From NCBI GenBank assembly GCA_048013815.1, contig CM106585.1, positions 18,848,001 to 18,912,000 on the forward strand: DNA of 64,000 nt. The letters are read 5' to 3'. Position 1 is the stretch's first letter; every line of letters begins with the position of its first letter. This DNA comes from Setoptus koraiensis (Eukaryota; Animalia; Arthropoda). The notes under the pieces are model-generated. The model did no database searches. It worked only from the letters and a program-made list of their open reading frames with translations, and was not told the DNA's origin. Position numbers and translations under genes: made by a program. Positions 248-45,111 of the stretch are shown in pieces.

Positions 248-292
248 CATATCGCTGGGCCGCATATCGCTGGGCCGCATATCGCTGGGCCG
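248..292. repeat. 15-bp minisatellite x3
   Basis: CATATCGCTGGGCCG, three perfect copies. Confidence 0.9.
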
Positions 293-541: not shown

Positions 542-632
542 AACGCACGGCAATAACGCGCGGCAACAACGCGCGGCAACAACACGCGGCAACAACGCGC
601 GGCAATGACGCTCGCCAATAACGCGCGGCAAT
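542..632. repeat. 13-bp minisatellite x7
   Basis: Consensus AACGCGCGGCAAY, seven slightly degenerate copies. Confidence 0.9.
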
Positions 633-927
633 AACGGCCCATAGCGGTATGCAAATGAGCCGCCTGGCCTGTTGAACTGGGCCCCTCGCCCTTGGTCTCT
701 GCCTCTCGCTGTGTCTCTGTTCGGCCGCTTCTCGGAAGCGCTTTCTAGCGAGCTAATGGCCGGTTTGTGCAACACCTCCAGATTATTATCTAATTACCTA
801 ATTACCTGGCGATGTGCGTCGCACGCTTTCGTTGCGGAGCCTCGGAGCGGCCCGCGCAAAGCCCGCACGCGAGCTGCACATGATACAACAAGCCATGTAA
901 CGAGGCTCTAAATAGCTACACGACTCA

Positions 928-966
928 TGGCCTCTATACCTCGTGACTTACGAGGTATAGAGGCCA
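928..966. other. Perfect 17-bp inverted repeat with 5-nt loop
   Basis: TGGCCTCTATACCTCGT-gactt-ACGAGGTATAGAGGCCA. Confidence 0.9.
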
Positions 967-1277
967 CACGACGTGCAAAGGTTATACCCTGCACGCTGTG
1001 AAAAGGTGCCTGGAGTGGCGACCGTCCGAGCGGCATCCGGAGCGGCCCGCGCAAACTGTGCCGATCGGCACACGGGCCCCCGGTAATCTAATCAGCGTCT
1101 CTTGTGCGGGGCCACTCGGGCGCGCTACGACCTGTCACTTGTTATTGGGCGCGCCGTGCACCCCACGGGCCTCGCGGACACAGAATCCCGGAAAATCCGG
1201 GGAGACTCCACGCATTCGCTACAAGATATAAATGGAGTGTTCACTGTAGCGAGTCTATCCGTCGCCCCTCTGCCGTT

Positions 1278-1380
1278 GTTGTCGGCGCTGCTGCTGTTGT
1301 TGTTGTTGTCGCTGTTGTTGTTGTTGTTGTTGGCGTTGTTGTTGTTGCTGTTGTTGGCGTTGTTGTTGTCGCTGTCGCTG
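1278..1380. repeat. (GTT/GCT)n trinucleotide microsatellite
   Basis: A run of GTT/GCT/GTC triplets that generates spurious poly-L/V/N/T ORFs in several frames. Confidence 0.85.
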
Positions 1381-6317: not shown

Positions 6318-6410
6318 GCGGCTCATCGGATCGCGCCGGCCCGGCGGCTCATCGGATCGCGCCGGCCCGGCGGCTCGTCGGATCGCGCCGGCCCGGCGGC
6401 TTGTCGGATC
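6318..6410. repeat. 26-bp minisatellite x~3.5
   Basis: GCGGCTCRTCGGATCGCGCCGGCCCG tandem copies. Confidence 0.9.
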
Positions 6411-9400
6411 GGCACGCATTCGTACATGCTCTATTGCGTCATATATTGCGTCATATATGCACAAGTGTGTCATTTTGTTGAAATTTGTGCCGAGTGACTG
6501 GCTGCTGGCGTTCGAGCGGGCCGGCCCGAGCGACACCCTAAGTAAACAATCTTCCGCGAATGAGTGTCAACTGATAACTGTTTATTTCTGGGCATAAAGT
6601 GCCCGCTCGCCTGCGCACAGTCGCTGCACAACAAACGAACGATTGGGCCCACTTTATGCTGCCAGCATCCTGTTTGCGCTCCGGCGCCGGGCCGTCACCC
6701 GATGCGTCTCAACGGGCCGGCCGCCGTAGACGCGCTGCTAGCGGGCGGCCGGGCGAGCGGATATTCAATCGGGCGTCGAATTGAATATCCGCCGACCAGC
6801 GGGCGTCTCGCCCGGTCGCCCGACGCAGTGAGCGCGCCCAGTCGACGGTGGGGCCGCGAACGCGAAAGCAATAGCCGTTGAGCGGCCAATAATGGTGGCC
6901 GCGTTCATTTATTGATGCATTTAGCCCCATACAAAGTCGGCTGTTTATTTTAGGGTTAAAAGCTTTTGATTGTAAACACAGCCAAATAGTCGGCTGGCAT
7001 ATTGTCGTCGGTTATTGTCGGCCGGGCCGGCACGTGATTTGGCGCGCCTTTTGAGCGGCCCATGCCCCGTTCGCTGCGGACCCGAGTGCACACTGTCGGC
7101 CGACCCGGTGTGTACACAGCGCTCACGGTTACACGTACGGGCTGGCGGCGTGCGCGCTTGCGGTAACTGGGCCCGTTGCACGTGCCCAGTGGCCACTCGG
7201 CAAATATCCGCCCGGGTGCCCGTTGTGCCAGTGCGTTGCCGGCGCCGGAGTTGCTGTCGTTGCTGTTGCTGTCGTTGCTGTTGTTGTTGTCGCTGGGGCC
7301 CACGCCGATTAACCGTTAGTTAGGGGCGGCTGGCGGCGCACGCAAACAGCGACAGATAAACAGAGAGCAAAAGTAATCAATATGACCATTGTATTACATA
7401 ACGCGCGCCCAATCGGCACACGATTGGCGCTGTGCGCCGCTTGTGCCGACTGCGCGCGTCTCGGGTCATTGGATATCGCTTGCGATCTCGAGTCCATCTC
7501 GCGGCCATCACCACTGCCGGCAGCATACATTGTGCCCACCAGATATATATATATATATGTCCGATATAAATGGACGACAGCAAACCATTTGGTCATTACA
7601 AGTCACCGTCGCCATTAGATTGGACCGTTACACGAGACAGTGGCGCGCACTGTTAGTGTGCGCGCCGCGCACAGTTGGCACACGATGGCCACCAGATAGC
7701 GAGAGATCCAATTAGGAGTGTGCGATGGAAAATTAAATTCAAATCGGACCGCGCGCGCAGTTTTAATCGAGCGACTTAATGGGCGCCCGGTTGATGGCCG
7801 CTCGCGGGCCCCAATCCATCAGTTTGCTCGCTGGCGAGTCGCGGGCACAAGCGCAAGTGGCGGGCTCAATCGCGAGTCGCGGGCACGGCGAGCGGGCGAA
7901 AAGTGATGACTTGTCGTTCTTTGTCGCGGCCGGCCCAACGAGGAGCCGACCGACGTCCGATGCATCGGGCCGCACGAAGCCGAGGGGCTGACCGAAGGCC
8001 GCTGCGCCGGGTTACGGTGTGCGCAGCGCCACTTGCGCACACTGCGGCCCACGGCGGGCCGATTATTCAAAGTGCGGGCCGGCTCACGACACAAATCAAG
8101 CCGCGACAAGATGGTTCAATTAGGCCTGATTGGGGCCGGCTCGGCCGCTGCAACTGCGCGCGCCGGCCCGCTGGCGCCCGTGGCTGTGCCGGCGAGCACG
8201 TGCAACCGCGATGGGCGCCCATTAATCACTTTGGGCCGGTTGGCTCAAGCCGGGAGCCTCGAAGGTCCGGGGGACCGTCAGCCCGGCGGCTGCCAAGATG
8301 GGCGCAGGCTCAAATTGATGGCGTCGCTGGCCGGGCACCCGGTGAAACAATGGCCGCTTGCTGCTCGCTGTCCGCGGTTGACCGTGAACTGGCTCATTGA
8401 GCCCGGCAAACCGGTTGCCGTTTTTTATTTTCACAAGAGTGCGCCCGATTCTCTCGCTTCTGTGCCGGGTTCTGGTCTGTAATGCCGGGTCGCCGGCACC
8501 ACAGACCCCCCCGAGATCCGGTGTCAGTTGCCTGTGAGCCTGGCTAGGCGTGTTGCGTAACTGGCCGAGGGTGGCGCTGCCATAGTCTGGCGTGTTGCGT
8601 AACAAGGGGCGCATGTTGTGCCGCAGTGTTGTTACAAATTGCAATGACCGACGTCGCGTTTGTTTGTTTTTGTTGTTTTTTATGCCTACTTCGGTTCGCT
8701 TGAACCGACTGCCGGCAGGGGCCGTCGGTCGGTTCGAATTGGCACGCCGTTCGGACTGGCTTGCAGCATCCGCAATTGCGACGCCAGCCAACGCTGACAT
8801 CCAATGCAAAGTGACGCGGCGCCCGACCAGCCCCGCAAAACTGGCAAAACCCGCTCACGGCGGCCCGCAAACTGCAATTGCGCCCGCCGATGGCTTATGG
8901 GGGGCTTAGGCGAGGATGTATGATTAGTTGTAGTTGTGCAGCATCAATTGGGCGCAGTTGGTGCTGTTTGTTGGAGCATGAATCAGGCCAACGACGCGGG
9001 CCCAAGACGACCGACGGAGCGAGACTCCGGCACACAATAAATGTCTGCGTGTTTGTGTGTACACGGATTAACATGACACGAATTTAAATTTTATCCGTGG
9101 CACCGCCGTGGCGACCGAGGTACCCATGTGCCCGATAGCCTAATAGGCCATTAGGCTATTAGGCGGCGGGCCGTCGGGCTGTCGGGCGGGCGGGCGGGCG
9201 GAGCAGTGGCGGTTGGGCTGGAATTATTATTACTGCTATTATTATTGCGCTGTGTGCAATTGAATCTTATCCCGGTGCAGATTTTCGACGGGCCGGCCCG
9301 CAGCGAGTCGCATTTCGGACGATTCAGGCGTCGATTCAGCCACCGCAGTTTTGACACTACGCGACCGCCTAATGATGACGCGCCGCGTACGTGGAGAGAG

Positions 9401-11479
9401 CCGGCTCGTGACAAAAACGAAACAATATATCAGCGAACGCTTCGGCAGCGAACGCTTCGGCATAGAACGGATCGCCAGAGAGAACACACTTTATAATCTG
9501 CTTATCGGGCCGAGAAAACGTGTCAGTTTATTGGAACAGTTTTATTTTACACAATTCAATTGTCGCTGCCACTGCTCGTGCGAGCCACTGATAGCCGGCG
9601 AACGGTGCCAGTCGGGCCCCAGCGAGCAAACTGGAAAAAATTGTCTCATTGTCTTGTTTGTCTAATACACAATGTGACTCTTATAGGGCTTATAAATGAC
9701 GGCTTATCAGCGATGGGGCGCTGATTGGGGCCACGGCGATTGGGCTTAAATGGCTGGCATTATGTGTGATATTTAGCAACGGAATGTGCCGCTGTTGTGG
9801 CGCGCAATGTTCTCACAGTCGCACACACTTGGCAAGTGTTAGCGTGATCGATGGGGGTTTTAAAGGCGCACCGGAAGTGGCCACTAATTCCTTTGCATGA
9901 GTTATTGTGCATTGTTGTTGGCGACGAGGCGCGCTTGTTGCCGCCGACGGATAATCATGCCACGAACGTGTGTGTGTGTGCTTTAATTAGTGCATTAGTG
10001 AGCATGAATTAGTGAACATGAATAAAACAGTTAATTATGTGAATTATTTCTGACCAGAGTCAAGCCAGAGTCTCCGCAGCAAGTTGTTTCTTGCGGCGGC
10101 GTTGTTAGTGGGCTGGCAAGTGACGATGGGCACAACAGTTATGTAACGGCCACCGCTGACAGTTATGCACAATTATGCAGTGCGTACGTCAACCGGCCGA
10201 CAAGTTGCCGCCGACAAACTCATTTAACAGTTGAGTTGTGAGTCGTTGTTTGTCGTCGGCTGTCGGCCAACAACGACGACCACCAACACAAGGCAACGCG
10301 ACGCACAACAACAAGCAAAACTCCCCGACAACAATGCAAACGAGGCACGGCTAATTGATTGTTGGCCGTTAAATGATGTTTGCGTCATGTTTGCGCAACA
10401 CTAATGAGCCTAATGAGCATGATCGAGCTTGAATCACGGCGGCGCCACTAGCTTGCCAGCGGCGGCCAGCCAACAGCAGACAGCGGCACAGTTGGCACAC
10501 GAACAATGTTTGTTTGCCATGCGATAATTAACATTTGAATGAGCGACGCCATCGCCGTGCGCTATGGTCCCGGCCGCGGTCTCGCTAGCCCGCCAGCAGC
10601 CAGCGGGTTAGTCAGCCAGCGAGTTAGTCAGCCGACGAGTCAGGCGGCCGGCCGGCGAGTCACAAGACACGGCACAATTAGCGCCCCACGGGTGGCGCAC
10701 GCCCACACCGAGCGTGCCGGCAAGCCAGACACGCTCGGGCCACTAGCGGCGGACAGCGACATCATTAGAGCGACTGTTGCTCGCCGGCCGCCGGTCACTG
10801 GTGGCGGGTTACTGGTGACCGGTCACTGGTTGAGCCCGGCTGCTAGTGAGGCGAGCCGGGCGCGGAGCCGGCCCGCGACCACGCGGGCCGCCGCCGATCG
10901 GAGGCGGACAGCCGATGGAAGGCCCGCGGAGAGCCCGCGGAAGGCTGGCCGAAAACCGCTACGGCGCCCATTATTCATTTGTCAGCGCCACAACTAAACA
11001 TGACAGTTTTACACTGCTAACTACACATTGTGCAAAACTGTTACAACCAAAATGATGATGATTCTTTGTTGGTCACACACACACACGCTCACCAATAAGC
11101 TGCCCACGCCCCCTTGCTGGCGCTCACCGTTTGTCGCCAGTGGGGCGCTTCAATCGGCGACAACTTGCAAAATGCTGGCGAGAAAAAAAAAAGTTGGGCC
11201 CACAAAGAGAATGGGGCCCCCACCGACGGGCACAAAATAATAAATTGGCGCGCGTGCTCCAATGTTGAGCCGGCACAGTGAATACGTACGCAAACAGTGT
11301 TGCGATGGAGCGGGCCAAAAAGAAGAAAAAACAGCCAACAAACACATAGAGACAGCCAAATTGGATCACTGCAAATCAGTGAATCCAGTAAGGGTGCGCG
11401 TGCACGCAGTGGGCGCCCCAAAGAATTATGTATGCGCCGGCCTCTTATCTTGTTCTTCCGTTGCGCGTTGTTGTGCGCG

Positions 11480-11570
11480 TTGTTGCAGTTGTCGTAGTTG
11501 TCGCTGTCGCTGAAGTTGTCGCTGTCGCTGAAGTTGTCGCTGTTGTAGTTGTCGGCGTGGTTGTCGCTGT
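11480..11570. repeat. Degenerate GTTGTCGCT-type triplet-derived repeat
   Basis: GTTGTCGCTGTCGCTGAA is duplicated within a GTT/GTC/GCT tract. Confidence 0.7.
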
Positions 11571-13154
11571 CGAGTTCTTTTTCGACGAGTGGCGTCGAGT
11601 ATTGAGTTGCAGTGGTGTTAGAGAGAGGAGGCAACTTTGCGTAGCCGCTGCAAACGCGCACACAATAAATGCCGATAAACGGTGGCGAATTTGGCAAAAG
11701 TTGAAGAAGAAGAAAACGCAATCACGTCACACATGTAAACTTGGAGAGTGGCCGCCATTAGGGACGGCCCCCAGTTTCAACAAGCGCGCAACATTGCGCG
11801 TTGGGGCGCCTCAGTTTCTCCGTTGGGCCCATAATTGAATCATCACCACCAGTGGCACTACTCATTGACAATTGTGCGATCGAGCGAGCGCTTGCAGGCT
11901 CGCCGTTGCGGCCAAAGCAAACGCTGTGCTGCGGCGCATTTTTATTATGCTCTAAAAACATGAAATAATTGTAAATTTTCAGCGGCACTCGGTCCATTGT
12001 GGTGCACCCAAGTTTGGTCCGATCCGGCGGGCTCTTATGTAAGCGCTCATATTATATATATTATATAAATTGTATATGTTATATGTGTTGGATGTGTTAT
12101 ATGTGCGGGCTGGCGGCCAACTGCAAAAGTTCAACTTGTGCAACATTAATGCAATGGTAATGGGCTACATCCATTGGCGGCCATCGGTGGTTGCATAATA
12201 AACGACTAGTGCTTGTGACAGAGAGCACACAAGCGCGATTAAACGAAGCGCAAAGTGATTTACAAATCCAATTTAGTGCTAATTACCAACGCGGGCCCAC
12301 TAAATTGAATTCGCGACTGCCAGCGCCGCAGCTGGCTCGCTCTTGTGGGAGCCCTCCGCTCGTCCACTTGTAGTTGCAGTTGTAGTGGCCGTTGTAGTGG
12401 CCGTTGTAGCTGCCAGTGTAGTCGCTCTGAAATTGTCATTTCGCACACGCTGCCAGACAGAACGATGCCAGAGAGACTTATGGCGGACAGTTCGGGAGGC
12501 CAATGGCGGCCCGATCAACAATTAGGCCCGGTTCATTGGTGGCGATAAGTTTATTGTTATGGCGCTATCTTGTCCCGGCCAGTTGCTCGTTATCTGAGCC
12601 GCTCGCAGCCGAGTCACACGCACATGTGCTGCGCCCCGAGTGTGCCCATATCCCGGTCATTTGCTGCTGATTTCCCAGTGACATCCCGATCATTTGCCGG
12701 CGTTTTCCAGCGATACTCAGCCTTTTCCAGCGATATCCCGGTGCCCCAATAGCCCAGTGTCACAGTATCATATTATCCCGGTGTCATAGTGTCCCAGTGT
12801 CATAGTATACTACGGGCATCGCGGTGTCATAGTCGCAGCCGTAGCCGGGCCTGGCCTGGCTGGCGCGCTACTTGTCGCAAAGCGCTGATGTAATCCTGAT
12901 GCCTGATTCGCAACAACAGATATCGCCAAAGAGATAAGCACGGGGGCTCGAGCTCGCTCAGTTTAAGCCATTATTATTATCTGCATTCTATGATTATTAT
13001 GCCATTGCTGCATGCCTGACGTGCTTCTCCTTCTCGTCATTGCTCGCCGTTGCTCGCCATACCATGTACACCTAGCGATGATACCCAATCGGGCCGCTGG
13101 CACTGCATGTATTGCGCCCACTACGCGCTAAGTGTCGCAGCAAGTTGGCCCATT

Positions 13155-21931: not shown

Positions 21932-24900
21932 ATGACGACTAAAAACATCAACTACCAATCCAATGGTAGCAACAACAATAACAAACCTCTGATTAGTGAT
22001 GAATACGATAATGGCCTGCCTATTCAAGGTGGACAATCCATTTTAGCGCCACAGTATGCCTATCATATTTATGATCAAATTGTTCCTTACATGATCAGCA
22101 GCAACACCACCACTTCCAACAATGTCAACAATAGTCAATCGACCAACGATACTAACAATACTGCTACCACCAACAACACCCTTTATGATCATATTTATCA
22201 TCAAATGCCTGGTTACTCACTATCTAGCACATTGAATAATTATGATGCCATCCTACAGCCTAATCTAATGCAACACCAGCATCCATCTATAAGTATGGGA
22301 CCGTCTTCTTTCAAATCGTCGTCGACTTCCTCGTCTTCGGCTGCCTCAGCAAGTACCACCACCACCACAACCTCAGGTACCAGTAACAATGGTGGTCAGT
22401 GCAATCAATCAACAAATCAATTGTTGCAACACCACCATCTTCATCAAACAAATCAGCATCACCCTCAGCAGCATTTGCATCAAATTAATAATCAATCATC
22501 CTATAATTTGGCCCATCATCTAAATGGTGCTTTAACAACTGTACCTTGTCGAGATCGTCATTGCACACTTAATTTAGCAGCAACAAATTTCAATACTAGT
22601 GGTGGTAATAGAAGACATCTTCAACATCAGCATTCATATAATCACAGCTTGCATGCAATGCAACAGCATCAGCTACTAGCTCAAGCCTCAAACAATAATA
22701 GTCATCATCTTCACAATAATGTTATTGTCAATCATCACAATCACCAACAAAATGCGAAAATCAGCCCATCTTCCAAGGTTCTATCTAAGATCTCATCATT
22801 ATTTGCACCCTCCATTAATGGTATGATTGGCTTGCGTAATAATCTTACAAATTTAGCAAGCAATTCTAACACTAATAGTCTTAAGAAAACAACACAGTTG
22901 TCACAACATTTTCAAAGCAATCAAAAAACATCGCCATTACATCTTCAAACTCAACTATCACCTATGCCTCTATTAGGTGGTGTCAATGGTCAACAGACGA
23001 CTACTACAACGTCCACCTCGGCCTCAAGTCATTCAAAATTTCACCAACAAAAATCTCCTAATCATCACCTCTTTCAACACCCAGCTGATATCATGAATGT
23101 GAATCCTGACTCATGTCGTGATGATTCTAGCGATCTGAGTATCAATTATGATTTGATCATAATCAAACAGCAACAACATGAAAGGAAACAGCAACGTAAA
23201 CGAATTCGTAATAATCTTATATTCTGGGCATTAGTGACTACAATTTTAATTAGTGTGATAGGTATTACAATAAGAGCCATCTTCATGGGTGAGTACAGCT
23301 TCCGAATTAAAGTCTCTTCAGTTAGAAAAAAAAACGAAGGGAAAATATCGCCAACTTCTCCAGTTCCATTTTTTATAGGAGCTAAGAGAAGAAATATTTT
23401 ACTAAATAAACGAATTTTTTTCCATACCCTAAATACGCATTCATCAGATAATCAAGCACCCTCATCTCAGAATAGTAACTTTGAACAATTGTATCCAAAT
23501 GGAAATCCTGAACTCACATGGCAAACTCAAGCAGATCCTAGCAATGATCCAAACAATAAAATCCTCAAATCAAGCCCATATTCTCCAAGAGGCAACAGTG
23601 CGCCATCTACCGTTCCAATTTATAGACCTAATTCGATATCCGTGCCATGGGAGCCTACTAGATATCCAGATACAGTAGACCTAACGCAATTAAAAGTTGG
23701 TCCCAATCAGATACCTGATATTTCTAGTCAACAAAATCCTATCTACAGGGGCGACATGGTTCCTCAGTTGAGAGCCCAAGCAGAATGCAGTGGTCATGGA
23801 GTTTCTATTAGAGGCGTTTGCAAGTGTGATGTGGGTTACAAAGGTCTAGATTGTCAGCAAAGTATTTCTGAATGTTCTTCAAGCAATTGTAACAACAATG
23901 GCCAGTGTATCGATGGTCAGTGCCAATGTTATGCTGGTTTCACTGGCGATCAATGCGCGGATCGGGATTGTAATGATAAGAAATGTTCGAATAATGGATT
24001 TTGTTCACCTGTTACAGGACAATGCCAATGTACTCCAGGATACAAGGGAGTTTCATGTGAACTACGTGATGATGAGATTTTGCAACGATTGTTAAACTGC
24101 TCGAATCATGGCCAACTCAATTTGAATGAAAAGAGGTGTATCTGTGATCACGGATTTGTTGGATTTGATTGTTCAGAGGAAAAATGTGATGCAAATGTTG
24201 ATTGCGGGCAAAATGGTATTTATAATTGTCAATCTGGAAAGTGTACTTGCAACGACGGCTATTACGGTGATAGATGTGAGTTACAGCTATGCTCATCACA
24301 ATGTATGCATCATGGACATTGTGTCAATGGAACTTGTGTTTGTCAACAAGGATTTTATGGTAAACACTGCACTATTGATGGATGCCCCAACGACTGCAGC
24401 GGTAGAGGCGAATGCATTAGAAAAAGTCCCCTCTCCCAGGAATGGCACTGTCATTGCCAGCCTGGCTCTACCTCTGACGATTGTAGTCTTTTGTTAGAGC
24501 AGACGTGTGACGATGGTATCGACAATGACGAAGGTGAGTTAGAAACTGAAAATTGATATTCAATCATACTCAATCTTGATTTATATACTAAGATCTAACA
24601 ATCAATACCCTTCACATATTTTTATACATATATATTGACATAATTATTTTATAGATGGATTAATCGATTGTGCTGACAGTGAATGCTGCTCAGAACGTGC
24701 CTGCCAGAATAGCACATTTTGTCTCAAATCAGCAAATCCTATGGATATTCTTATGAGAAAACAACCACCACCACCAACCTCATCATTTTTCCAAAGGATG
24801 CAATTCTTGATAGATAAAGATTCATCACAGAGCTATGCCACTCTCAAGGACTTCACAGACAGGTAAGTGAAAGTAAAAATACTTTTCTATAACATCATTA

Positions 24901-27013
24901 TTTCCTATATTCACTATCTCCTTTCACTTGTAACTTAAGCTATCCTTAACTAACATTACTAGCCTATATCTTACTGATCAACTTATGTGAATAACTTCCT
25001 ACTATCATGGTATCATATTAACGACTCAACTCGCTGAATATAACTTTATTAAACTCGACACTGTTGACTCTAATCTATAAAACTACACATCTATCAACAA
25101 CTACATAAAAATATCAACTTGATAACTATCACTATAGTGCAATATCTAAACATCTTGTCGCCGAGTAAGTCTTGTGTTGCACACTCTACTTCTACCCTTT
25201 TTCTATTCAGACAACCATTTTATCTTTTGTCGACCATGACTAACATATTTTCATCTTCCTTCTTTATTTTAAACTTTAGTCGAGCTTCAGTCATTCGAGG
25301 TAGAGTAGTTCATTCGAAGCAGGGTATCATAGGAGTGAGAGTATCGATCGTGCAGCAAGTCAGTTTAGGAATAACACGTAAGTATTACACTTTTGCGAAT
25401 CTATAATCAAGTTTCAGAGCCGAGAATGTCTGAACTAACTTTACATATATTGTTTCAAAATTTACATGAATTATCAATATTTAAATGCAGTTACTAGAGA
25501 AGGTGGCTGGTTTGACATCATGGTCAACGGTGGAGGCGCTGTCACACTAGAGTTCAGGCGTGAGCCTTTCTTGACAGTCGAAAAGACTATTGCAGCTCCA
25601 TGGAATGAGATTGTTTTAATAGATCCTGTCGAACTGCAGCTGGAATCTGCCAGTAAGGATGTTAAATTCCAAAAGATACCGCCAATAACAGGAAATCCTA
25701 TATGCCCGGAGCACAACAATGAGCTCATGAAACCTGAAGTTTTAACACCACCTAAAGCATCAGCAAAACACATTCAGAAAAGTTCCATTGCAAATCAGAA
25801 ATCGTCAACAAGCGCTATCTTGAGGAACTCAAGGACCGTGCAACAATCAATTGTTCTACCAGGCACATCCGCTCCGGGTTCGAATCAGCAACCAATTCTG
25901 CTTTTGTATAACTCGAAACGAGCCAACGAATTCATGTCTACCATAGATTTACAAGTGACACCGACTGAACAAGAAATGAAGCTTCCCGACAACCTCAAAG
26001 CGGTTCATCTTAAAATAACAATTGAAGGGAATTTATTTGAGCAGGTCTTAGAACCTCAATCAAATCTTACTTTTACCTACGCCTGGAATAGAAGAAATGT
26101 TTACAAACAGAAGTCTTTTGGTCTATCAGTAGCAAGAGTATCTGTAGGTTATGAATATTTCAGCTGTCAGCAAATCATGTGGACTATGAAACAAGTTCAA
26201 CTACCTGGTCATGATATGTTAATATCTGATATTGGATCTCATTGGAATTTGAATATCCATCATCGTTATAACTATCACGATGCCATTTTGCATCGTGGAG
26301 ACGGGCAAAATTTTTATCTGAAACTCGATAAGCCACTATGGTCTGGTCAATCAAATGTACCGGTCATAAACAAGCAGGGAGAGTATGAAATACCGTCGCC
26401 TGATAATAGCGATGAATTGCTTATATTTAATAGAAATGGCTTGCATATAGCTACAAGGGACGTATCCGTGGCTGGTACAACATCAACATTAGCAACGGTT
26501 TTGAACTCGGCTCATCAGCAAGTCGATAGCAATGGTCACAAAAATAAATACACCTTCACCTATGATGTTAATACCTCATTTGGGCGTCTATCCTCTGTAA
26601 TAGACTCAACCGGAAATAAGATCTACATATTGAGAGATGGACATCATAATGTCAAAACAATCGACACCACTTTAGGTGGTAAATGTCAACTCGAGATCAC
26701 CAAGAATGGCTTGCTTCTTTCTATTGTGACCAATAATCTACGCCAGCAATCTTCCATCCAGAATGAGACAAAATTCACTTTCGGCTATTACACTGATGGC
26801 GGTTTGTTAAAACAGAGTTATGATGCAAATAGCGGTGATACTTATGAGTTTAGCTATGACGATTTTGGACGTGCCCAAAGTATAACACACAAGGATAGAA
26901 AGAGTTCAACAGTAACTGAGTGTCCGATCAGTACTAGTATGCACACAAATACCATAAACAGCGCCAACAGCAAACAATTGGATTGCCATGAGTTAGTTTT
27001 GGATGAATTTTAA
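21932..27013 (+). CDS. Teneurin (Ten-m/Ten-a family)-derived type II membrane protein, internally deleted and C-terminally truncated (~1,423 aa spliced)
   Basis: Proposed exons: 21932-23288, 23448-24533, 24655-24862, 25280-25377, 25491-27013. Donors are GTGAGT/GTGAGT/GTAAGT/GTAAGT, acceptors are AG, and phases are compatible. Translation gives a low-complexity intracellular region, basic stretch RKQQRKRIR, TM helix LIFWALVTTILISVIGITIRAIF, 7 EGF-like repeats and the teneurin Cys-rich motif CDDGIDNDE|DGLIDCADSECC. It continues RKQPP..SFFQRMQFLI, RASVIRGRVV, LTREGGWFDIMVNGGGAVTL, FTYAWNRRNVYKQK, WNLNIHHRYN, NTSFGRLSSVIDSTGNK and YDDFGR. Ten-a versus Ten-m not resolved. Confidence 0.92.
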
Positions 27014-28589
27014 ATCAAAACTTGCACTTCGAACAAGCAACTATACTTAAGCCAGCTTGATAAAATCAAACATCGTACATGCTATCTGGATAGCAAATTA
27101 ACGAGAAAGGAATGTGATATACTATTGTTATAAATTATTATTATTATTATTACTATTACAGAGTGGAAGTTTGAAATTACCTTTTGAGAACTTCTTTGCT
27201 AAATAAAACAAATTATACAAATTATTCATCTTGACTCTCCTCATTTAATTGTGCAACATGCTTATTTCACGTGTTGCGTCAGCGTCAACGATTCTGTGAG
27301 ATGCCATATGTGTTTGATAACTAATCTTGCATATTCCATCGTTGAATATTTTTGGGTTCAGGCTCGTGTGCCCGACTTTTGTTGGTCTGTCAATGAGTGT
27401 CATGAGTTGTTGTGTGTGTTCGTACAACGATTCACGTAACTCGAATCAAGTTAACCAAATACTAAATTGGCGCATTCAAAGCTGCCTCTGTTGTTCGGTA
27501 ATCCTACGTGGTTAAGGTAGGAGATCCTCGAGGACATGAAAGTGATAAAGACTGTAAGCAAAAATAATTTGTTGAAAATCGGAGTATCAGCCTCGTTCCT
27601 ATGTTATATTACTCAGCATCGATAGCCCAGTAATTTTAAATTATTTATATTGCATAGTATCATTATTGCAAGTATTTCAAAAAACGTGGGTTTAAGAATA
27701 GCGTATTCTTTGAGCTCTCAATCTGGAGAGTTCAGAAAAGCTATAGTTGGGTCAATCTGAGTGTCACACTAAAGAGGTTTACCTTGTAAGACACTTCATA
27801 ATAACAAGCCAAGCAGCCTTCAAAACAAACAACTGATGACAACAAAACCAAATACAAAAGTTGGGGAGCCCGTTCGATTTTGGAGAATTAATTCCATATC
27901 GTAGCACCTTGCTTCATCTATCAGGGATCTACTTGAGGATTCCATTCGTATTGTCTGTTGTCTTCGTTAACTTACTTACCAGGAGCTAGCAATTAATTTA
28001 AGCCCCATGTTTTCAGATGTGTATCAGATTGATTTTATTCGATCGGCGCTCTGCATGATCCAAGTTCGAATAGTCCAAGTTTTACTGCTAAAAATTTTCG
28101 ATTCGCGCGCCAATTCTCTGAGTCACTCGTGATGTGTTCGTTTCGATGGTGCATCATAAAAAACAACAACAGAAGCACTAACAAGCATAATAAAGCATCA
28201 ATAGAGAAAAAGTCTGCGTAAGTTCGATTCCACTATACTTTCTATTATTGCATACAGCACCAATCTCTGCTCTTCGGATCATCTATAACCTACAAAGTAC
28301 ACACATGGATTCTTTGTAACAAGTCGAGTGATTGTCTTGGAATAGTCGTTTTTATTTACATCGACACCAACGCAGTTTTCTTTTTTCTATATTTTATTCT
28401 TCATGAGAAAACCTATTCCCCCCGCGGAACAAGCCACTCACATTATGATATTTTTCTTCGATCAAGATCTATGAAACGCAAGATTATTAGCATCATCCGG
28501 CCGAGATATCGAAATTGTTCTCTTGTGACTACGCACTTACAGAAATTCATGACACACTTTAAATACTCGAGACCACAAGATATCTAAGA

Positions 28590-31500
28590 ATGAGCTGGTT
28601 CAATTCATTGGTAAGCAATTAATTAATTGGCTAAGCAAGCTTTAGCATAACTATTACTATACCTCTTATGATGTTGTGTCACCATTTATCTATTGATGAT
28701 GATGATCTAAAAGCAACCAAACCAAGCCGCAGAGAATATTTATCTAACCCGGCTAATGGAGCGTTTGAATTGTTTCTGTGACTCAATATTACTACACGCA
28801 AGGCCCTTTCATTCTGTCACAATTAATAATCAAAGCACACGGATACCTCTGCTCTGTTTCACTAGAATACTATCGCTCCAAGCCTCTACGTCTAGTGTCT
28901 TATCATATACTACCACTACTACTCCTACTGCCGCTTCTACTATTACTTCTATTGTTGGATGACAGTAACATCTCAACTATACGGAACGCTCCTTCTCGGC
29001 ACTTAGCGCTCCGTCAAAATAATGAGATTTAACTGAGATATTGTTGAGACAACACACATGTGTACCAATAGCCAAGCGCAAGAATTGAGTTCCAGTTGTA
29101 ACCATTTTTGAAGTTTCAATCATTCAATGCTACTAGAGATAACGAGAGAAATCAAATGATGGACTACTACAATGAACCCATTATCTATAATGTTAGTTCA
29201 TGGCATCAACTTTTGTATTCACTCACCTAACTGACTGTAATATACTCATTACAAGTGCTTTTCACAAATAGCCCATTACCTAAATTCACTCTGTGCATGT
29301 CATCAATCTCTTAACCGAACATAAGTTCATCAACCAATAATATTGCATGATACAGCCACTGACCACAACAATTATGGCATGTTCTTCCCCCGACCTCTCT
29401 ACACAGCGCATGTTTAACAATGATAGAAATGTAGATTTGTCCGGTAGACATCTCCAAGAGCCCCTAGTAATGACAATGATAAACCTAAGTAACTGACACC
29501 GAAATGTTTTGCACATTTTTCAACAACTAAATTACTAATAGACTCCCTCTCTTGCAATCTCACTCGCATCTCTAGCTGGGAGATCCCAAATCTGGAACTA
29601 AGGCCCCAGTAATTCAAGATTATGCCTCTATTAGAAATCATTGCCTTAATAATGGGATATTATTTGAAGATCCCGTATTCTCACCAGAGGCAGCTGGCTC
29701 AACAGCCAAAAGAAGAGACTGTGAATGGCTCAGGCCTGGTGAGATCAGTCAGCGACCAACATTTATATCATCGGGTGTATCAAGATTTGATGTCATCCAG
29801 GGAGAGCTTGGCGACTGTTGGCTTATAGCTGCCACTGCAAATCTCAGCCTTAATCAGAGATTGTTCTCTCGCGTAGTGCCCACAGACCAATCTTTTGAAC
29901 GCGGTCAATATTGTGGTGTATTTCATTTTAGATTTTGGCAATTCGGAAAATGGGTAGACGTGGTGATCGACGACCGTCTTCCAACAATGGATGGTAAACT
30001 ATTGTTCGTTCGAAGTAGCGATGAAAACGAATTTTGGTCATCATTATTGGAAAAAGCATATGCTAAATTACACGGCTCATATGAGGCCCTCCGGGGTGGT
30101 ACCACATGCGAAGCTATGGTCGACTTCACTGGAGGACTGACGGAATACTTCGAAGTACAATCAGCCGAGTGTCCACCAAATTTGTTCAATATTATGTTGA
30201 AGGCATTTGAGAGACAGTCACTCATTGGTTGCTCTATCGAAGCTCAGGACGAGTCTCAACGTGAAAACGAACTACCCAATGGATTAATAAAAGGTCACGC
30301 CTATTCTATAACATCGGTCATAAATTTACCATATGAAGGACGTCACATACCAATGCTCAGGCTCAGAAATCCCTGGAGTGGGACCAGCGAATGGAATGGC
30401 GCTTGGTCTGATGGGTCTTCTGAATGGCACGGAATAAGAGACTATGAGAAATCTCGTTTGGGACTCACTTTCGAAGCTGATGGTGAGTTTTGGATATCCT
30501 TTCATGACTTTAAGCGCAACTTCACCAGAGTCGAAGTATGTAACCTTGGACCAGACGCTTATGATGATGACAAACAAAGGCAATGGCATGTTCAAATGTT
30601 TGAGGGCTCATGGGTGGCAGGTGTCAGTGCTGGTGGTTGTAGAAACAATCTCAACACTTTTCATCTAAATCCTCAATACATATTCTCGCTCGTTGATCAT
30701 GACGAGGGAGATAGTGAATCTTTGTGCACCTGCATCGTAGCTCTTATGCAGAAGCATCGTAGATCAAAATACAAAATGGGTTCGGATCAATTAACGATTG
30801 GATTCGCCATTTATGAATTGAAAGAAGGCAGTTACCAGAAAGAACCCGTAGGATACTCTGCACCTCAATTCAGGCGCCAACTTTTGACTCTAGACTTCTT
30901 CAAGTATAACTGCTCAGTTGCGAGAAGTCCAACATACATCAACTTGAGAGAGATTAGTGCACGTTTCAGATTGAGACCTGGTACTTATTGTATAATACCT
31001 TCAACATTTGATAAAAACGAAGAGGGCAATTTCATATTACGTGTATGGACAGAGACTCCAACTCATAACGCGCATGAAAACGATGTCGATCCCGCTTTGT
31101 ATCCCGCCGTGGATCCTGTCGTGCCTCCGCAACCAGCACCAGCACCTACGCCGACACCGGCCTTACCAGATCAACCATCCTACCCGGCATATCCAACACC
31201 GGCCGATCCCAAACCGAGCTATCCCACCCCACCCGCACCTTCGTATCCCTCGTATCCATCATATCCATCATATCCATCATATCCGTCTCAACCAGGTCTA
31301 CCTGGCTATCCTCAACTACCAACGGATGGAAATGGATTCAGCTATCCAACGTTACCTCAAGAACCTATCATCAAACCAGCTGTCGCACCAGAACCACCCC
31401 CGGGTCCGCGCTACCCTGATATAAATGTTAGTGAGGTTATATCAACCATACAAACAATAATCAATGTTCTAACGATGTGCTGGACGACTTTTCAGAAGAT

Positions 31501-32242
31501 GCAAGCATCGACAAGTCCTAGCGGATACCCTAATAATAGGGGTGGTGTTTTCAACGAAAATATAAGCTATTCCACAGGCTACAGAACTCACGCTGAGAGA
31601 AAAGATCCAGACGAATTTTTCAAGAAAGTTGCCGGCGACGACATGGAAGTTGACGCTCACGATCTTCGAAAAGTATTGAACACTGCCTTAAAGAAAGAGT
31701 TCAATTTTGAAGCTTTTACACTAGAGACTTGTCGCTCGTTAATCGCACTCTTAGACGAGGATCATTCAGGTAATCTAGAACTGGTGGAGTTCAACAAATT
31801 ATGGAAAGATATACGACTGTGGTGCAATATATTTATGAAGCATGACATTAATAAGGATCATTGTATTGATGCATCCGAACTTAAAGAATCGCTGAGGGAA
31901 GCGGGTATTCAAGCTAATCGAGTATTGCTGACTGATCTTGTGCGACGATACGGAAATGTAGAAAAATTCACTCATGGTAAGCTACAAGTGCCACAAGTTG
32001 TTCGATCGCTATCCTTTGATGCTTTCGTCCATTGTTGCGTAAAATTGAAAACAATAATATCGTACTGGGAGATGCAAAGAAAGAAATCACCAGTCAGACA
32101 TGAGATGCATCATGTCAGGTCAGCGGACAAATCTTCGATGAAAGGAAAAATGCGCATGATAGACAGCGAGGACGATTTAGATGGAATAGACGCAGCCTCA
32201 TTCACTCTGGACGAATTTGTCACTCGTGTTATGTACTCATAG
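28590..32242 (+). CDS. Classical calpain (CysPc protease core, domain III, penta-EF hand), Calpain A/B-like
   Basis: The main exon 29576-32242 is one ORF with catalytic Cys (QGELGDCW), His (KGHAYS) and Asn (LRNPW). It has domain III motifs (GGCRNN, NPQY, PGTYCIIPSTF) and C-terminal EF hands (DEDHSGNLELVEF, DINKDHCIDASEL), ending VMYS. Probable first exon 28590-28610 (MSWFNSL) with a GTAAGC donor is phase-compatible with the acceptor at 29575; the first exon is less certain. Confidence 0.93.
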
Positions 32243-38514: not shown

Positions 38515-41500
38515 TTATTTAGCCATCATCTGAGAGAATCTTTTATATTCCATTTTCAATGCCTGCCTATTAGGGGCAAATTGTTCCAATCGTTGTAACG
38601 AATCATCGTCTTCCACACCAAATATACTAGAGTATAACGATTTTAGGAATGGAGCCGATTCAAAGTGGACGGTGGTTGTTGGCAACTTGATCATTGCTTC
38701 AAATTGTCGTTCATCTATTGCTCTTCTGTGGGTAGGTTTGTCGGTAACTTTGGCCGTTTCGTTAGGAGTATAGTCCTCAAATTTTTGCTCTGTGATACAG
38801 TATAAATCGCGAACAACCTTTCTGCAGTGCATCAAAAGTAAACAACGCCTCAATGATGCAACTAAGTCTCGTACTTGAAGTATAGAGACAGGAAATTCAT
38901 TATCATCGTCGTTGTTTGATTGCGCATCCAAGGCCTCTATCAATGAGTGATCTAAGCCTTTCTGCTGTTGCAATTTTCTCTTCTTCATTTCTCTTTTTCT
39001 TTTCTTCAAGCGCTCCTGTTTTGCAAGCAATCTCTGCTGTCTTCTCTCCTCAGCACTTTCATCGTTATTTTCACCATCCGAAATATCTTCGTCGGTTGTT
39101 TCATCGTACAATTCATCTTCATTAACTACTATGTCGGTGTCATCCATATCATCTGCGTCATCTACTTCCTCAACCTCCGCATTAGATAATTGTAAAATAT
39201 CCCTAAACTGAGAGGATGTGTGAGATACAGAGATGGATAGAGTCATATCTATTTGGTGTAAGAGGTAGAATGGCTCATCTAGTAATGTAAAAGGTAAAAA
39301 CATGATGTTGTCACTGATGTATTGAAGAATATCACTTTCGCTGCAGGTGGATAATACATATCGACTTTCGTTGACGTCATTGTGAGAAAGCATATTGGGT
39401 GCTGAAGATAATGTAGTTAGATCGAAGTACCTTAACAATGCATTGATAAAGGCCCGCCTTTGTTGACGTGCTGTGGCGATGACAGAATAGAGAGTGGATA
39501 ATCTGGCATTTACATTGACAGCATCTTTTGATTGAGACGCTTGCTGATTGTTGTTGGAAGACGAAGGCGAATCATTATTGTTACTCTGCGACTTAGTTTC
39601 GTTCGATTCGGAGCGACAAAAACCTCTGTTATGCCTGTTGAGAATGAAAGACTCTAATATTCCTTGTTTGGATTTCATTCCAACGAAATTGTGATATTTG
39701 CGCTCGATCTCTTGAAGGACATGGTCAGCTCGAATTCGTATACTCAGATCATCATCTGTCGAAAGTGCTATAAGACTAGGAACAATTTGTAAGGGGTTTA
39801 TGTGTCCTCCGTTATGTACACTATGTATCAGATTAATAGCGGCCCTCCTTATTCTGATATCTGATGACAATGCACAACTCAGCATGTCTCTAAGATATAG
39901 CTGAATCACGGATGATTGAGTTGAATTAGCGTCTTCCTGCTTGGAAGATGTCATCTCCTTTAGATTTTCTCGGGACCAATCGATCGCTGATGCCGATTTT
40001 ATCTCTTGTGTGACCTCATCTTGTAGATAATTCCTGAGATTGCTTAAAACACAGATGCTGGGTTCAGCGTTGTCTGTTTCTTTGAGATCTACTGCTTGTT
40101 TCATAAAGTGTTTGTATAGCGCTTGGGTCTCAGCTCTTAACATGAGCTGGGGTGATCTCTCAAAAAGGAATCCTAGTCCATTGAGGGATTTGAGCAATAT
40201 GTTCGTATTTGGCTTTACATGATTGGTGGAGTATGGATTATTGCAGGTATTATCTATATTTGATTCAACGTAATAGACTAGAGTACTAAATAGTGCATCT
40301 CGTTCTCTGATATTGAAATGTTTTGCAATCAAACCACAGGTGTAAAGAGATCGAAGAAAATATGCTCTGTTTTGCTCCAACATGCCTGGATTCATTCGAC
40401 AGTTTCGAATAACAGTGAAGAATCTTTTGAATATATCGTTAGAAAGTTGATGATTTTGTGTGTGCTTGTATATCAGCTCTGACAAACATGAAACACTGAC
40501 AGGTATAACTGGCGCTTGGCCTCCGAGTATAAGCTTTGTGAGATCTCCCTCTATCGTTTTGAGCGTACTTGCACTAGGATTAGACATAGTAGGTAAAACT
40601 AATTCAATTATCTGAATAACCTTGATGAGTATCATGAGTTCTAGTTGAGATTTGGCTTCAATTGACAGGTATGATTGCAAAGTTTCGACATGATGCATCA
40701 ATAAGAGCGGTGATACTTTAGCAAATAACCACAGAGTAGTCATAGCAGCTAAACAATTAGCCCTAGTATTTGTGTCTTGTGAGCTCGTCGTTAACATATC
40801 CGATACTAGAACCGCTATTATCTGTGATGAAGATGCTAAAGTTTGTCGGACACTGATGAGTTCCGCTGACACAACTTCCCCGTTATCTCCAGTTTCGGCT
40901 ACATCGGTGCCTCTTCGCCTGGATGTCGCTGATTGATTGTTATCGCCTGATTGATTCGGTTTCACTTTTAAAAGACTAGTCAGAAGTTGGTGCAACCACT
41001 CAGTTCCAATACCTTCAGCCAAAACAGTAGCTACAACGTGGGTGATACACGTAACTTTGTTAACCACAGCTTCCTGGCTTTTCTCATCTTTGAACCACAT
41101 CGTAGTGAATGTTTCGGTGACAAGCCTTCTAATACCCTCGCCTTCATCATTGATTCTTTTGATCATTTTAGAGCAAATTTCCGGTACTCGTGAGTAGGAT
41201 GAATACTGTAAGCAAATCTCACGAAGAATCTTAATAACTCTTTTCCTCACAGATACTCCAGAATCCATTATTCTTTCGGTTATTATATCGTAGTAGCGAT
41301 CCACCAAGTTTTGCGATTGACTGTTCAGTATGAACCGACCAATGAGCTCAACAGTTGATTCTCTCACACTTGCAGACTGATCAAGCAGGGATAGCTTGAT
41401 TGCTTTTTGTAGATCATCACGGGCAAGTAGATTTGTGGCACAGTTTTGGGGAGCGTTATTTAGAACATGGGATAGAGACTTCATGGCACGAGATCTTATG

Positions 41501-44488
41501 TTGGTATTTGAAGTACTTGATAGGGCTGCAACAATATGAGAAAGCGCAGCATCAAGTAATTTTTGTGTTGTTGGTAGATTCATGTCCAGCATCTTGATTA
41601 TTAGTTCAGCCGTTCTTTCATCAATAGTTGTGTCGTCTTCACAAGTAGATTCAGGGGACAGTGGACCATCTAATTGATTCAACAAATCATCAGTCGTACT
41701 AAAATTGAGATCATCAGAATCGTTGCCACCTCTTTGTTTGGAAGAAACAGAAATTATACGAAAAAAGTCCCGAACCATCTGATATTGAATATCTCCACTA
41801 GTTGGTCCAGACGATGCCACAGTTTGTTGCTCTTCACCGTTATTTTGAAGTGAAGATTTTCCATAGCTTCGAACGGCATTACTATTTTGGCTGGCACTGT
41901 TACTTTCATCGTCATCAGATATCGTAGAATTGGCTTGTGTTGCAGGGTTTTGAGCTTCATATAAAGCCTTAGCGCGTCTCTCAAGCTCTTTCAACCACAC
42001 GGCACAAAATATATTACGTGTACATTTTGAAACACCTTTCTCCCTCTGACAGAAATTTAACAGTGCTAGCCAAACTTTTCGTTCGTCTTCGGGAGTGAAT
42101 ATGGTCTGGTCTCCGTTTTCCAAGTTGTCGTCAGTGTCATTAACTGCAGCGGTATCTTCGTCCGTGGCTTCTGAGTCTTCCTCAGTTTCACTATCTTCGA
42201 TAACTCGTTTCAATTTTCTCTTTATCTGCTTCTTTCGCTGTCTTCTTTTATTACTGCTCTTGCATGAGGGTCCCAAGGGTGTAGGCAACGATCCAAGATC
42301 AATAACCTTCAAAGATCTCATAACTTCATCCTTATACTGACTGAGTAGACTGTTTTCCTGGACTAAGCGCGCGCATATTGTTCCTAGATGTTCTAAACTG
42401 GCTAGCTTTAGTGTTTGGTTCGTAGGTAATGCGGCGCTCTTCTTTCCTTGGTGAGGAGTGATGTTTTGAATGAGGAGCTTGACCAAAACTTGAGTTAGCA
42501 ACTGCGAAGTACTCCACGTCGGTTTATGCAGAGTAGCCATAAGATCCTCGACGAAGTTGTCGAATAGAACCCTGTAGTCGCATTCATCTTTTTTATCTAC
42601 ACCACAACATCGTCGCAAGAATGATGATAGAAATGCAAATGACACGCGAATGGCGACATCATATTGAGATCTCAACATTTTATCATAACTCTGTATATCT
42701 TTGAGGTCTTCATTTTGTTGCGTTTGTGTGAGATTTAAACCAACTTTAGTCCTATCAGTAGCAGCTGATTTTTTGATGGTAAAAAGGGACTGAATAAGTT
42801 GCATGATTAATGCAGAAAATATAGAAATTGATTCTGTCGAGGACGAATGACTATTAGTTCCTATCTTATATTGTACTCTATTGCGTTTTGTTGTTGGTAG
42901 TCGGGCGATTGAATGGAGCAATTCCTCAAGTATAACAGTCTGGTGGGTCTTATATGAAGCAAATATAGCCGTGATCACATGTAGGGCATTGAGCTGTAAC
43001 TCGTTAGAAGATGATGAGTCCATCAAGAAGAAAGCCGTCAATGCTGCCCGTGATGTCGACAACACTAGGGTATCTGTCAATGTAGCTTCGCTTCTACAGG
43101 TTAATAATTCATTAACAAGAGCTAAAACTTCTGAACTCTTCGCATTGAGCTTCGTAAGAGACTGTTTATTGAAGAGGCATCTCCTCGTAGAATTGCTTTT
43201 ATCCTGATTATTACCCTTACTTATTTTCTTTGGCGATGAGCAGTGACCTCCTGTAGTAGTGTCTGTTATCATCAACAAAGCGGAGTTCACAAATGTAATT
43301 ATGGCTTCAACACATTCTTCTAAGTAGACTCGGCTAGACATGCTCCTGGATGTCATTATATTGAGAGCAATAACAGAGCAATCACAACAAATTTCGAATT
43401 TGAGCATCCGGGTGGCTTGAGCGTTGTTTTGGCCATTGTACTGATTGGAATCATCGTCTGAATCTTGAGAATCATTATTTCCGGTAATATTACCGTTGTC
43501 GTCTTGGATTTGACTGCTTTTCAGTACTGCACTTTGAACATCCAACTGAGATGTGAGAGCACTCAAAAGAGAGGTTAATTTGTTTATATTGACATTTTTC
43601 ATTTGATTGGACCGTTTCAGTTTGGCACTTATGGCAACCAGATGTGATAATTGCTTTGGAGTAAGATTGACGTATTTGATAGATCCATCACCAAAACCGT
43701 TTTTCATATGCTCATCGAATATATCATCAAGGAATCTTTCAAATTTCGGTAGCAATTTATCACTTGATCCGGAGGAATCTATAACCACCTTTGCAGTTGA
43801 TTTTTGGGTATCTTTGTGCACGTGCTTCTCTTTCTTGATTTTAGTTTTGAGCTTTTGTTGATGCTGAAGATGCGTATTATGTTTTTGCTGATGGTGAGTC
43901 TGGTTAGTAGCCTGGTGTTGCGACGAATGCGTAGTCTGTGGCTGCTGATGAGGTGGATAATGCTGGTGCGTTGGTTGCGGTTGAAATTGCTGATAGGGGG
44001 GCTGAATTTGTTGTGCTTGTGCTTGAAGTGGCTGATGAGTTATGTGAGGTGCCTGATTAAGATGAGTTTGGTGTATTTGTTGTTGCTGATGAGCTTGGTG
44101 TGCTGGGTACTGCGGATGCACCTGATGAGCTTGGTGTTGAGGGTGCGCTTGTTGTTGCTGGTGCTGTGAATGGGTTTGCTGAGGGTGACGTTGTGGATGC
44201 GTTTGCTGAGGTTGATGGTGCTGAGATGGATGGTGAACCTGGTTTTTAATGTGTGCTTGAGGGGTCTGGTGAGGATGCTGCTGCTGTGGCGTTGGTCGCA
44301 CTGGCGACTGTGTCTGATGCGCCTGCCTAACTTGATGGGGAATTGTATGCAAGGGTGTCACGGCTGTTTGTATTGGTGGTGTAGACGGCACTGGAGCTAC
44401 AGATGGTGGTACAGATATTAAAGGTGGTATTGATTGTGGTGGCGGTTTTTGCTCTAGATGTTGTTGTTGCTGTTGATGTTGTTGTTGC

Positions 44489-44522
<34 letters not shown>

Positions 44523-45111
44523 GCTGTTGTTGTTGCTGTTGTTGCAATTGTTGTTGTTGTTGTTGTAGGTGCTGTTGTTGTTGTTGCTGTTGCTGCTGTT
44601 GTTGCAAAGCTGCAGAGCTAACAATGTCCTGAAAAATCTGTTGGTGAGTGCCAGGTGTTGGGTGTATTGTGGGTGAAGGTTGTTGTTGTTGGTGTTGTAT
44701 AGGTGGTTGTTGATATGGAATGGGTGCCTGACATGGCACTGAAATTACATCCTGAAAAAGTTGATGATTATTTACAATAATTGACATCAATGGTGACGCT
44801 TGATGATATGGGCGAGCAGATGCTGAAGGGTAATTAGATGAAGTGGCAGCTTGAGTAGCTGGCTCAGCATCCTTGAATGTGAGATTGTCTAAATCATTAT
44901 GTAATCTGGCCAACTGTAATGCGGGTGCAATTACAGAAGCGACCTCGTGCAATTCGGCTGCTGTCTGTATAGGTAGATTGTTATTATCTATGAGGAGACA
45001 ATCATTGTCATTCTTATGTCGGGCTTGGGGCAATGGCAATTCATCCAGCAAGTCCACGAGACTATGTATAGTTGCCAAACCAACTCCATTCATGTTGAAT
45101 AAATGTTCCAT
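38515..45111 (-). CDS. Nipped-B: Nipped-B / NIPBL cohesin loader (single 6.6-kb ORF, 2,198 aa)
   Basis: N-terminal motif LATIHSLVDLLDELPLP (MAU2-binding region). HEAT-repeat region with DQSASVRESTVELIG, RIMDSGVSVRKRVIKIL, RINDEGEGIRRLV, GHINPLQIVPSLIALSTD and KYHNFVGMK, plus a C-terminal Nipped-B_C-like region. No introns are needed. Confidence 0.96.
44445..44600 (-). repeat. CAA/CAG polyglutamine tract within Nipped-B
   Basis: Encodes about 45 residues of near-pure Gln with occasional His/Leu. Confidence 0.9.

Follow-up and report, generated by a model that had tools for sequence, protein, structure and literature searches.

The 64,000-nucleotide stretch analysed here (the window throughout), positions 18,848,001 to 18,912,000 of the forward strand of contig CM106585.1 from Setoptus koraiensis, carries on its plus strand a teneurin gene of four exons, the product of which comprises 1476 amino acids. 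All exon borders are of the GT-AG type, a single reading frame runs across the four exons, and exon 4 is uninterrupted, lying within a plus-strand open reading frame (ORF) at 25466-27013. The product retains a cytoplasmic domain, one transmembrane helix, EGF repeats, a cysteine-rich region, the TTR (transthyretin-like) domain and the FN-plug, followed by what is left of the YD shell, a stub of 14 strands, and by a short cysteine-containing tail. The six-bladed NHL propeller expected between FN-plug and YD shell is absent, and the protein ends shortly after the shell has begun. We read the locus, with a probability of roughly 80%, as a functional, doubly reduced Ten-m-type teneurin gene of an eriophyoid-like acariform mite. 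Its parts are laid out as follows.

21932..24533, plus strand: exon 1, an ORF with a GT donor, encoding the cytoplasmic domain, the transmembrane helix, a juxtamembrane stretch and the teneurin EGF repeats.
About 23216-23284, plus strand: transmembrane helix, read from the sequence as a 23-residue hydrophobic stretch (residues 429-451) with basic residues before it.
23738-24415, plus strand: Pfam EGF_TEN match (E = 2.9e-54) with six EGF_Teneurin stretches.
24655..24862, plus strand: exon 2, set by AG/GT borders and frame continuity; the cysteine-rich region between EGF repeats and TTR.
25280..25377, plus strand: exon 3, set by splice borders; the first part of the TTR domain, matching residues 998-1034 of tick Ten-m in tblastn.
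25491..26323, plus strand: first part of exon 4 (the exon spans 25491-27013); the remainder of TTR and the FN-plug, up to the strand pair H-H-R-Y-N ... G-D-G ... Y-L-K.
26324..26380, plus strand: the linker that replaces NHL, 19 residues (L279-G297 in exon-4 numbering), mid-exon.
26381..26923, plus strand: YD-shell stub of about 181 residues with 14 predicted beta-strands out of 78, ending at a conserved cysteine (26921-26923).
26924..27013, plus strand: the 29-residue C-terminal tail, which has a second cysteine, a short predicted helix (495-501) and the motif C-x-x-L-V/I-x-x-E at its end.
27011-27013, plus strand: stop codon, the end of the exon-4 ORF.
27202..27207, plus strand: AATAAA, 189 nt past the stop, a putative poly(A) signal.

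With canonical Ten-m, represented by the protein of the tick Dermacentor albipictus (XP_065289524.1, 2754 amino acids; P0007 below) and the fly structure 8FIA, the mite protein shares a predicted type II layout, EGF repeats, cysteine-rich region, TTR, FN-plug and the first YD repeats, all in the same order; it differs in having neither NHL nor anything past approximately residue 1796, and in its new cysteine-containing tail. The layout would follow from a low-complexity cytoplasmic N-terminal domain of about 428 residues, encoded by exon 1, and the single transmembrane helix. Teneurin-type EGF repeats are followed by the cysteine-rich region, with exon 2 being 64% identical to tick residues 932-1000 (tblastn). 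In exon 4, Pfam recovered both TTR_TEN1-4 (PF25020, E = 7e-18) and FN-plug_TEN1-4 (PF24329, E = 2.7e-18) above cut-off, together with one RHS repeat, and the YD stub is 37% identical to P0007 residues 1625-1783. No named orthologue came up when the EGF portion of exon 1 was used in a word-index search, and an Rfam scan of the window returned no match. The counterpart gene of a related species, locus L002, encodes a protein that is about 91% identical; its AATAAA lies 182 nt past the stop, and the block conserved between the two species ends at 27222 (blastn). In L002, the exon-1 equivalent (3329-5958) was called as two ORFs (3329-4711 and 4837-5958); an additional intron, a frameshift or faulty assembly might explain this.

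A preliminary description of this DNA had proposed that the NHL propeller was excised whole and in frame, with no room left for an intron. The boundaries bear this out: the peptides quoted in support of the proposal occur as given in the ORF at 25466-27013, the junction lies mid-exon, and its two sides correspond to the Pfam limits of TEN_NHL. The FN-plug ends at K278 (26321-26323) and the YD part begins at E298 (26381), with no stop codon or change of frame in between. Aligned to the tick protein, exon 4 matches residues 1035-1286 (47% identity) and then jumps to 1625-1783; tick TEN_NHL occupies residues 1286-1641 (356 residues, Pfam), so the missing part at the junction is the NHL domain alone. 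The strand pair at the end of the FN-plug is the conserved segment that stands directly before NHL in canonical teneurins. Pfam found no NHL or TEN_NHL domain in exon 4 at E <= 0.1, and tblastn with three full-length teneurins (E <= 10) found no NHL-coding DNA in the whole window. Of the homologues covering both flanks, 36 out of 43 carry 308-441 extra residues at the junction (405-441 in the NHL-containing relatives of clade A, defined below), and six others are collinear with the window.

The linker keeps traces of both sides of the lost domain. Compared with P0152, P0151, P0002 and P0007, its residues 1-4 match the N-side flank of NHL in NHL-containing relatives and its final 8-11 residues match their NHL-to-YD linker; the deletion point falls within 26336-26356, where seven residues are ambiguous. 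The strand pair preceding NHL and that of the last blade are alike, and both were aligned to window residues 264-282. Loss of an exon was considered as the mechanism of the deletion and judged unlikely, as in the loci L005, L006, L007, L008 and L010 a single ORF runs from FN-plug through NHL to the YD start and no intron interrupts it at either edge of NHL. An ancestral event mediated by cDNA is possible.

The junction is real, far beyond chance, and not an assembly error. Sequencing run X2, from another sample and with another organism label, yielded one 6375-nt contig that covers 24000-27742 with 0 differences, junction and stop included, and fractions of 0.89-1.00 of the sampled exon 31-mers were present in seven runs. 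The suggestion that related mites be searched for the same junction was borne out in L002, where a single 25.9-kb contig carries the same junction, with a linker differing by one amino acid, and the same stop, followed by genes in the order seen in the window (teneurin, calpain, a Rieske protein and MDH). The same junction and end were also found in loci L001, L003 and L004. In principle, the junction or the early end could stem from a region collapsed or joined wrongly during assembly, or from a scaffold that is chimeric at the repeat close to 27.7 kb, and the X2 contigs do break at a multicopy repeat (27664-27787) through which the window assembly passes. However, given the identical independent contig, the words recovered from the other runs and the recurrence of the junction in L001-L004, in L002 on one contig together with stop and downstream calpain, we assign such an artefact practically no weight.

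The loss of NHL is accompanied by a second, larger reduction. The preliminary description had presented a teneurin lacking NHL; the absence of NHL stood, but the picture of a canonical teneurin minus one domain did not, since about 970 C-terminal residues are gone as well, comprising 64 of the 78 shell strands, the Rhs core, the internal linker, the ABD and Tox-GHH/TCAP. The protein ends after approximately 14 of 78 YD-shell strands, with no closed shell around an Rhs core. No match to P0007 residues 1784-2754 was found anywhere in the 64-kb window (tblastn), and the region of ABD and Tox-GHH with TCAP (P0007 residues 2542-2735) likewise had no window match; downstream, from 29861, lies a calpain gene. 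The early end is common to all six collinear relatives and to NHL-containing relatives. All proteins of clades A and B stop just past a cysteine at the same alignment position, and the tail motif C-x-x-L-I/V-x-x-E is common to eriophyoid-type members with or without NHL, including P0002, P0003, P0151 and P0152. Because NHL-containing relatives have the same early end and tail motif, the truncation predates the NHL loss; judged by these sequences, NHL was removed from an already shell-less teneurin.

Might the missing parts be supplied by a cassette exon, trans-splicing or a separate gene, rebuilding a canonical teneurin? The common truncation point is indeed where some nematode models (Steinernema) are split in two adjacent genes. 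Several observations speak against such a rescue: the junction lies mid-exon, the tail after the cysteine is conserved with a stop codon in all members, and no DNA for NHL, shell, ABD or Tox-GHH was found in the 64 kb here or within 1.5-10 kb downstream in six related loci. Specifically, no shell-coding DNA followed the relatives' genes in L001 (1.5 kb), L003 (7 kb), L004, L006 or L010 (10 kb; Panonychus citri, with a RefSeq model of 1376 amino acids), and unrelated genes begin shortly past the teneurin stop in L004 (ARPC2, 0.8 kb) and L006 (an opposite-strand gene, 0.3 kb). We consider a reconstituted teneurin very improbable.

Several nematode teneurin models end at the same point as the mite proteins, with Trichinella 'Teneurin-m' at about 1650-1700 amino acids and the Steinernema gene split in two adjacent models (P0028, P0029, P0375), an agreement that points to an old boundary between exons close to tick residue 1796, a place at which truncation could happen. 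Separately, P0063, the 'Teneurin-a' of Fragariocoptes setiger (1858 amino acids), gave a weak partial TEN_NHL match and no YD-shell, ABD or Tox-GHH match, so that the second (Ten-a-type) teneurin of eriophyoid mites may also be reduced.

Comparison with L002 confirmed the earlier view that the excision is viable. The ratio of non-synonymous to synonymous substitution rates (dN/dS) is 0.046 over the 505 codons of exon 4, at a synonymous rate (dS) of 0.82, and falls to 0.013 in the 79 codons within 30 residues on either side of the junction. Values are 0.042 for the YD stub, 0.175 for the tail (27 codons), 0.078 for the cytoplasmic domain (residues 1-430) and 0.20 for residues 431-867. The only indels in exon 4 measure 9 and 21 nt, while intron indels are not multiples of 3; splice sites are conserved in L002, and five of the six differences in the contigs of a third taxon are synonymous. 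The low dN/dS, the in-frame exon indels and the synonymous bias together indicate a gene kept by selection, not a pseudogene. They leave little room for the possibility that the locus is a decaying relic, with the NHL deletion and the early stop as steps in the loss of teneurin from a streamlined genome and an ORF intact only by chance. A relic would agree with the known gene and domain loss of eriophyoid genomes (PMC7738191), with the disappearance of over half of the canonical ectodomain and with the fact that no RNA evidence was obtained. It would not, however, account for purifying selection at this dS, for the conservation of splice sites and AATAAA in L002, for the tail motif conserved across clade A, or for the same architecture in clade B proteins that are only 35-40% identical, and we think there is very little chance that it is correct.

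AlphaFold2 modelling (61-row alignment) gave a mean predicted local distance difference test score (pLDDT) of 86.9 and a predicted template modelling score of 0.84. The pLDDT is mostly >90 in the first part of exon 4, 78-93 on the two sides of the linker and about 60 in the linker itself. In the model, the YD stub forms 14 strands within residues 298-478, and the tail contains a short helix. The fold matches fly, mouse, human and chicken teneurin structures, best 8FIA (Z = 27.5, 413 residues at 3.1 A), in structural alignments that bridge the missing propeller, and the plug and the first shell strands are therefore predicted to stand in their canonical relation. Without a shell, the shell-facing surface of the plug would be exposed or covered in some other way.

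To place the protein among its relatives, a maximum-likelihood tree was built on 410 columns, excluding the NHL columns. In clade A (100/100), the NHL-containing Ten-m of the eriophyoid Fragariocoptes (P0004) is basal, followed by the NHL-less pair of the window protein and P0001 beside the NHL-containing P0151, P0152, P0002 and P0003. The clade sits inside a group of tick, insect and copepod Ten-m, which identifies the gene as a Ten-m orthologue. Of the named matches to the neighbouring MDH gene, the best comes from the eriophyid Aceria tosichella (78% identity), and other named mites reach 70% at most. Clade B (100/100) unites five NHL-less and six NHL-containing proteins from environmental and run assemblies. 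Since the NHL-less members of this second lineage nest with NHL-containing proteins, their NHL loss is independent. Forcing all seven NHL-less proteins together cost 192 log-likelihood units (approximately unbiased (AU) test, p = 2e-43), and the same test ruled out a single ancient NHL-less paralogue; joining A and B as one clade was not rejected (p = 0.17). The simplest reading of these sequences is one or few old truncations, followed by two independent NHL excisions.

The topology of clade A also bears on whether the gene is a young duplicate, that is, a subfunctionalised paralogue of a truncated Ten-m gene with NHL, similar to P0152 or P0002, that resides elsewhere in the genome and does the NHL-dependent job. 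Such a history would fit the sister position of the window protein and P0001 to four NHL-containing proteins at 52-68% identity. On the other hand, the order of branches in clade A can be taken to mirror that of the species, and its NHL-containing proteins come from other samples and have other neighbours (an MFS gene in L005, a 601-aa minus-strand gene in L006) than the calpain found here. Moreover, Fragariocoptes has one protein named Ten-m, P0004 at the base of the clade, and one named Ten-a, P0063. A duplicate of this kind is, in our judgement, distinctly unlikely.

We favour a functional gene that was reduced in steps. An older event ended the protein near tick Ten-m residue 1796-1816, as it did in eriophyoid, spider-mite and other relatives that still have NHL. 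An in-frame deletion of about 1.0-1.3 kb within the exon later took exactly the six-bladed NHL, in the lineage that comprises the window species and the relative with 91% identity, and the same loss occurred independently in a second lineage of truncated teneurins; the product is retained under strong purifying selection. The excision may have been tolerated because the entry and exit strands of the propeller adjoin and the pre-NHL and last-blade strand pairs are alike. As NHL packs against the shell, it may have become dispensable once the shell was lost. What remains would be a type II surface receptor with an EGF stalk bearing a compact head of TTR, FN-plug and YD stub, probably signalling via its conserved cytoplasmic domain. 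In canonical teneurins, NHL and the C-terminal domains are implicated in latrophilin binding and homophilic trans-adhesion (PMC5851990). With no NHL domain left in the product, NHL-mediated homophilic recognition would be impossible, as the preliminary description had anticipated, and with the shell and C-terminal domains gone, canonical latrophilin binding probably is too. The new C-terminal cysteines may cap the stub or form a disulfide link, within the stub or between chains.

Several points weigh against this account. No transcript was found to reach across the junction or to cover the 3' end. RNA runs X15 and X18, which carry the species label of DNA run X6, have no reads on 24000-29900 and hence provide no test of expression; the RNA-type run X11 yielded three low-depth contigs of about 200 nt, none across the junction, which could be DNA, as one of them falls in an intergenic block. 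The absence of NHL, shell, ABD and Tox-GHH refers to the 64-kb window. AlphaFold2 may have copied the canonical geometry of related structures in its training set. Two losses are deduced from a single tree of 410 columns, and the main caveat is gene conversion between paralogues, which could mimic independent loss. Finally, what the protein does, what its terminal cysteines contribute and why the deletion was tolerated are all things that we infer.

More broadly, eriophyoid and perhaps acariform mites might possess no teneurin with an intact super-fold at all, the essential function residing in the cytoplasmic domain, EGF stalk and TTR/FN-plug head, with NHL dispensable after loss of the toxin-like shell and excised at least twice. 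We offer this wider generalisation only tentatively, and would sooner doubt it than assume it. If it is true that mites lack any canonical teneurin, they would be the first such bilaterians and a natural dissection of the interdependence of teneurin domains. The order of events, in which the shell went first and NHL second, on two occasions, suggests that NHL can work only in combination with the shell, and points as well to a conserved function of the N-terminal half that can be separated from the rest.

Acariform Ten-m-like proteins with the early end but an intact NHL are also on record. That of the spider mite Panonychus citri, XP_053203898.1 (1376 amino acids), shares the early YD-shell end, matching positions 6-147 of 909 of the Pfam YD-shell model. 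Fragariocoptes setiger KAG9508581.1 and the environmental P0002, P0151 and P0152 share that end too, the clade A members also sharing the tail motif; unlike the window protein, all of these keep a complete TEN_NHL. The second NHL-less lineage (P0011, P0153, P0157, P0160 and P0163; loci L001, L003 and L004) shares both losses, the same junction point, collinearity over 91-95% of exon 4 and the terminal cysteine, but is only 35-40% identical and has a tail of 1-4 residues compared with 29 here. The vertebrate NHL splice variants, with a 7-residue insert in an NHL loop, also represent natural NHL variation, which switches homophilic recognition on or off (PMC5851990, PMC11058771); there, one loop is changed by alternative splicing, whereas in the mite the genome itself has lost the entire domain of 350 residues. 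TRIPs (teneurin-related immense proteins), found in hemichordates and cephalochordates, are the only derived teneurin offshoot in a review that describes teneurin domain content as invariant (PMC6428715). They keep about 2600 teneurin-like residues and add >4000, whereas the mite protein is a reduction.

The preliminary description had named no animal teneurin of this kind. As regards the literature on teneurin in eriophyoid mites, Acariformes and Tetranychus this held, with no paper found on NHL-less or truncated mite teneurins and no mention of teneurin in the Aculops genome paper. As regards sequence data it did not: public assemblies contain six other NHL-less proteins, five of them in the second lineage and all unannotated ORFs, and truncated NHL-containing mite models are present in databases as annotations only. 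The locus adds a naturally occurring, selectively maintained teneurin without NHL, the domain held to set homophilic specificity, without most of the shell and without ABD and Tox-GHH. It also illustrates how a gene of the nervous system can be streamlined at the level of domains, in animals that are among the smallest known (PMC7738191). For annotators, it implies that mite models of the 1.4-kb class named "teneurin-m-like" may be complete genes, not fragments.

Around the gene, base composition and content vary along the window. G+C amounts to 54-60% in 1-12000 and 60001-64000, compared with 37-44% in the central part, where genes are dense. Short tandem repeats abound in the first 12 kb, where the only ORFs are rich in Arg, Pro and Ala and do not resemble genes; these 12 kb may constitute a long gene-poor region upstream of the teneurin gene. 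The approximately 840 nt between the teneurin 3' end and the block upstream of calpain (27222-28062) have no counterpart in L002. Within them lies the repeat core at 27664-27787, a short multicopy element at which contigs break and word depth rises from about 115 to 370-700. The calpain gene (29861-32242, plus strand) encodes Peptidase_C2, Calpain_III and EF-hands. Domain III is separated from the EF-hand domain by a long Pro/Tyr-rich insert with P-S-Y-P repeats, and the start of the coding sequence, one exon or more, must be located upstream of 29861. A related taxon's RNA-type library contributed a contig of 252 nt that falls at 28337-28585, in the L002-conserved block upstream of calpain, and could be a calpain 5' exon, untranslated region or DNA carry-over. 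Further downstream, a single 2198-aa ORF on the minus strand (38515-45111), with very long poly-Q/His-rich N-terminal tracts, exemplifies the near-intronless gene structure of the genome; we take it, as a guess from its sequence, to be NIPBL/Scc2-like.

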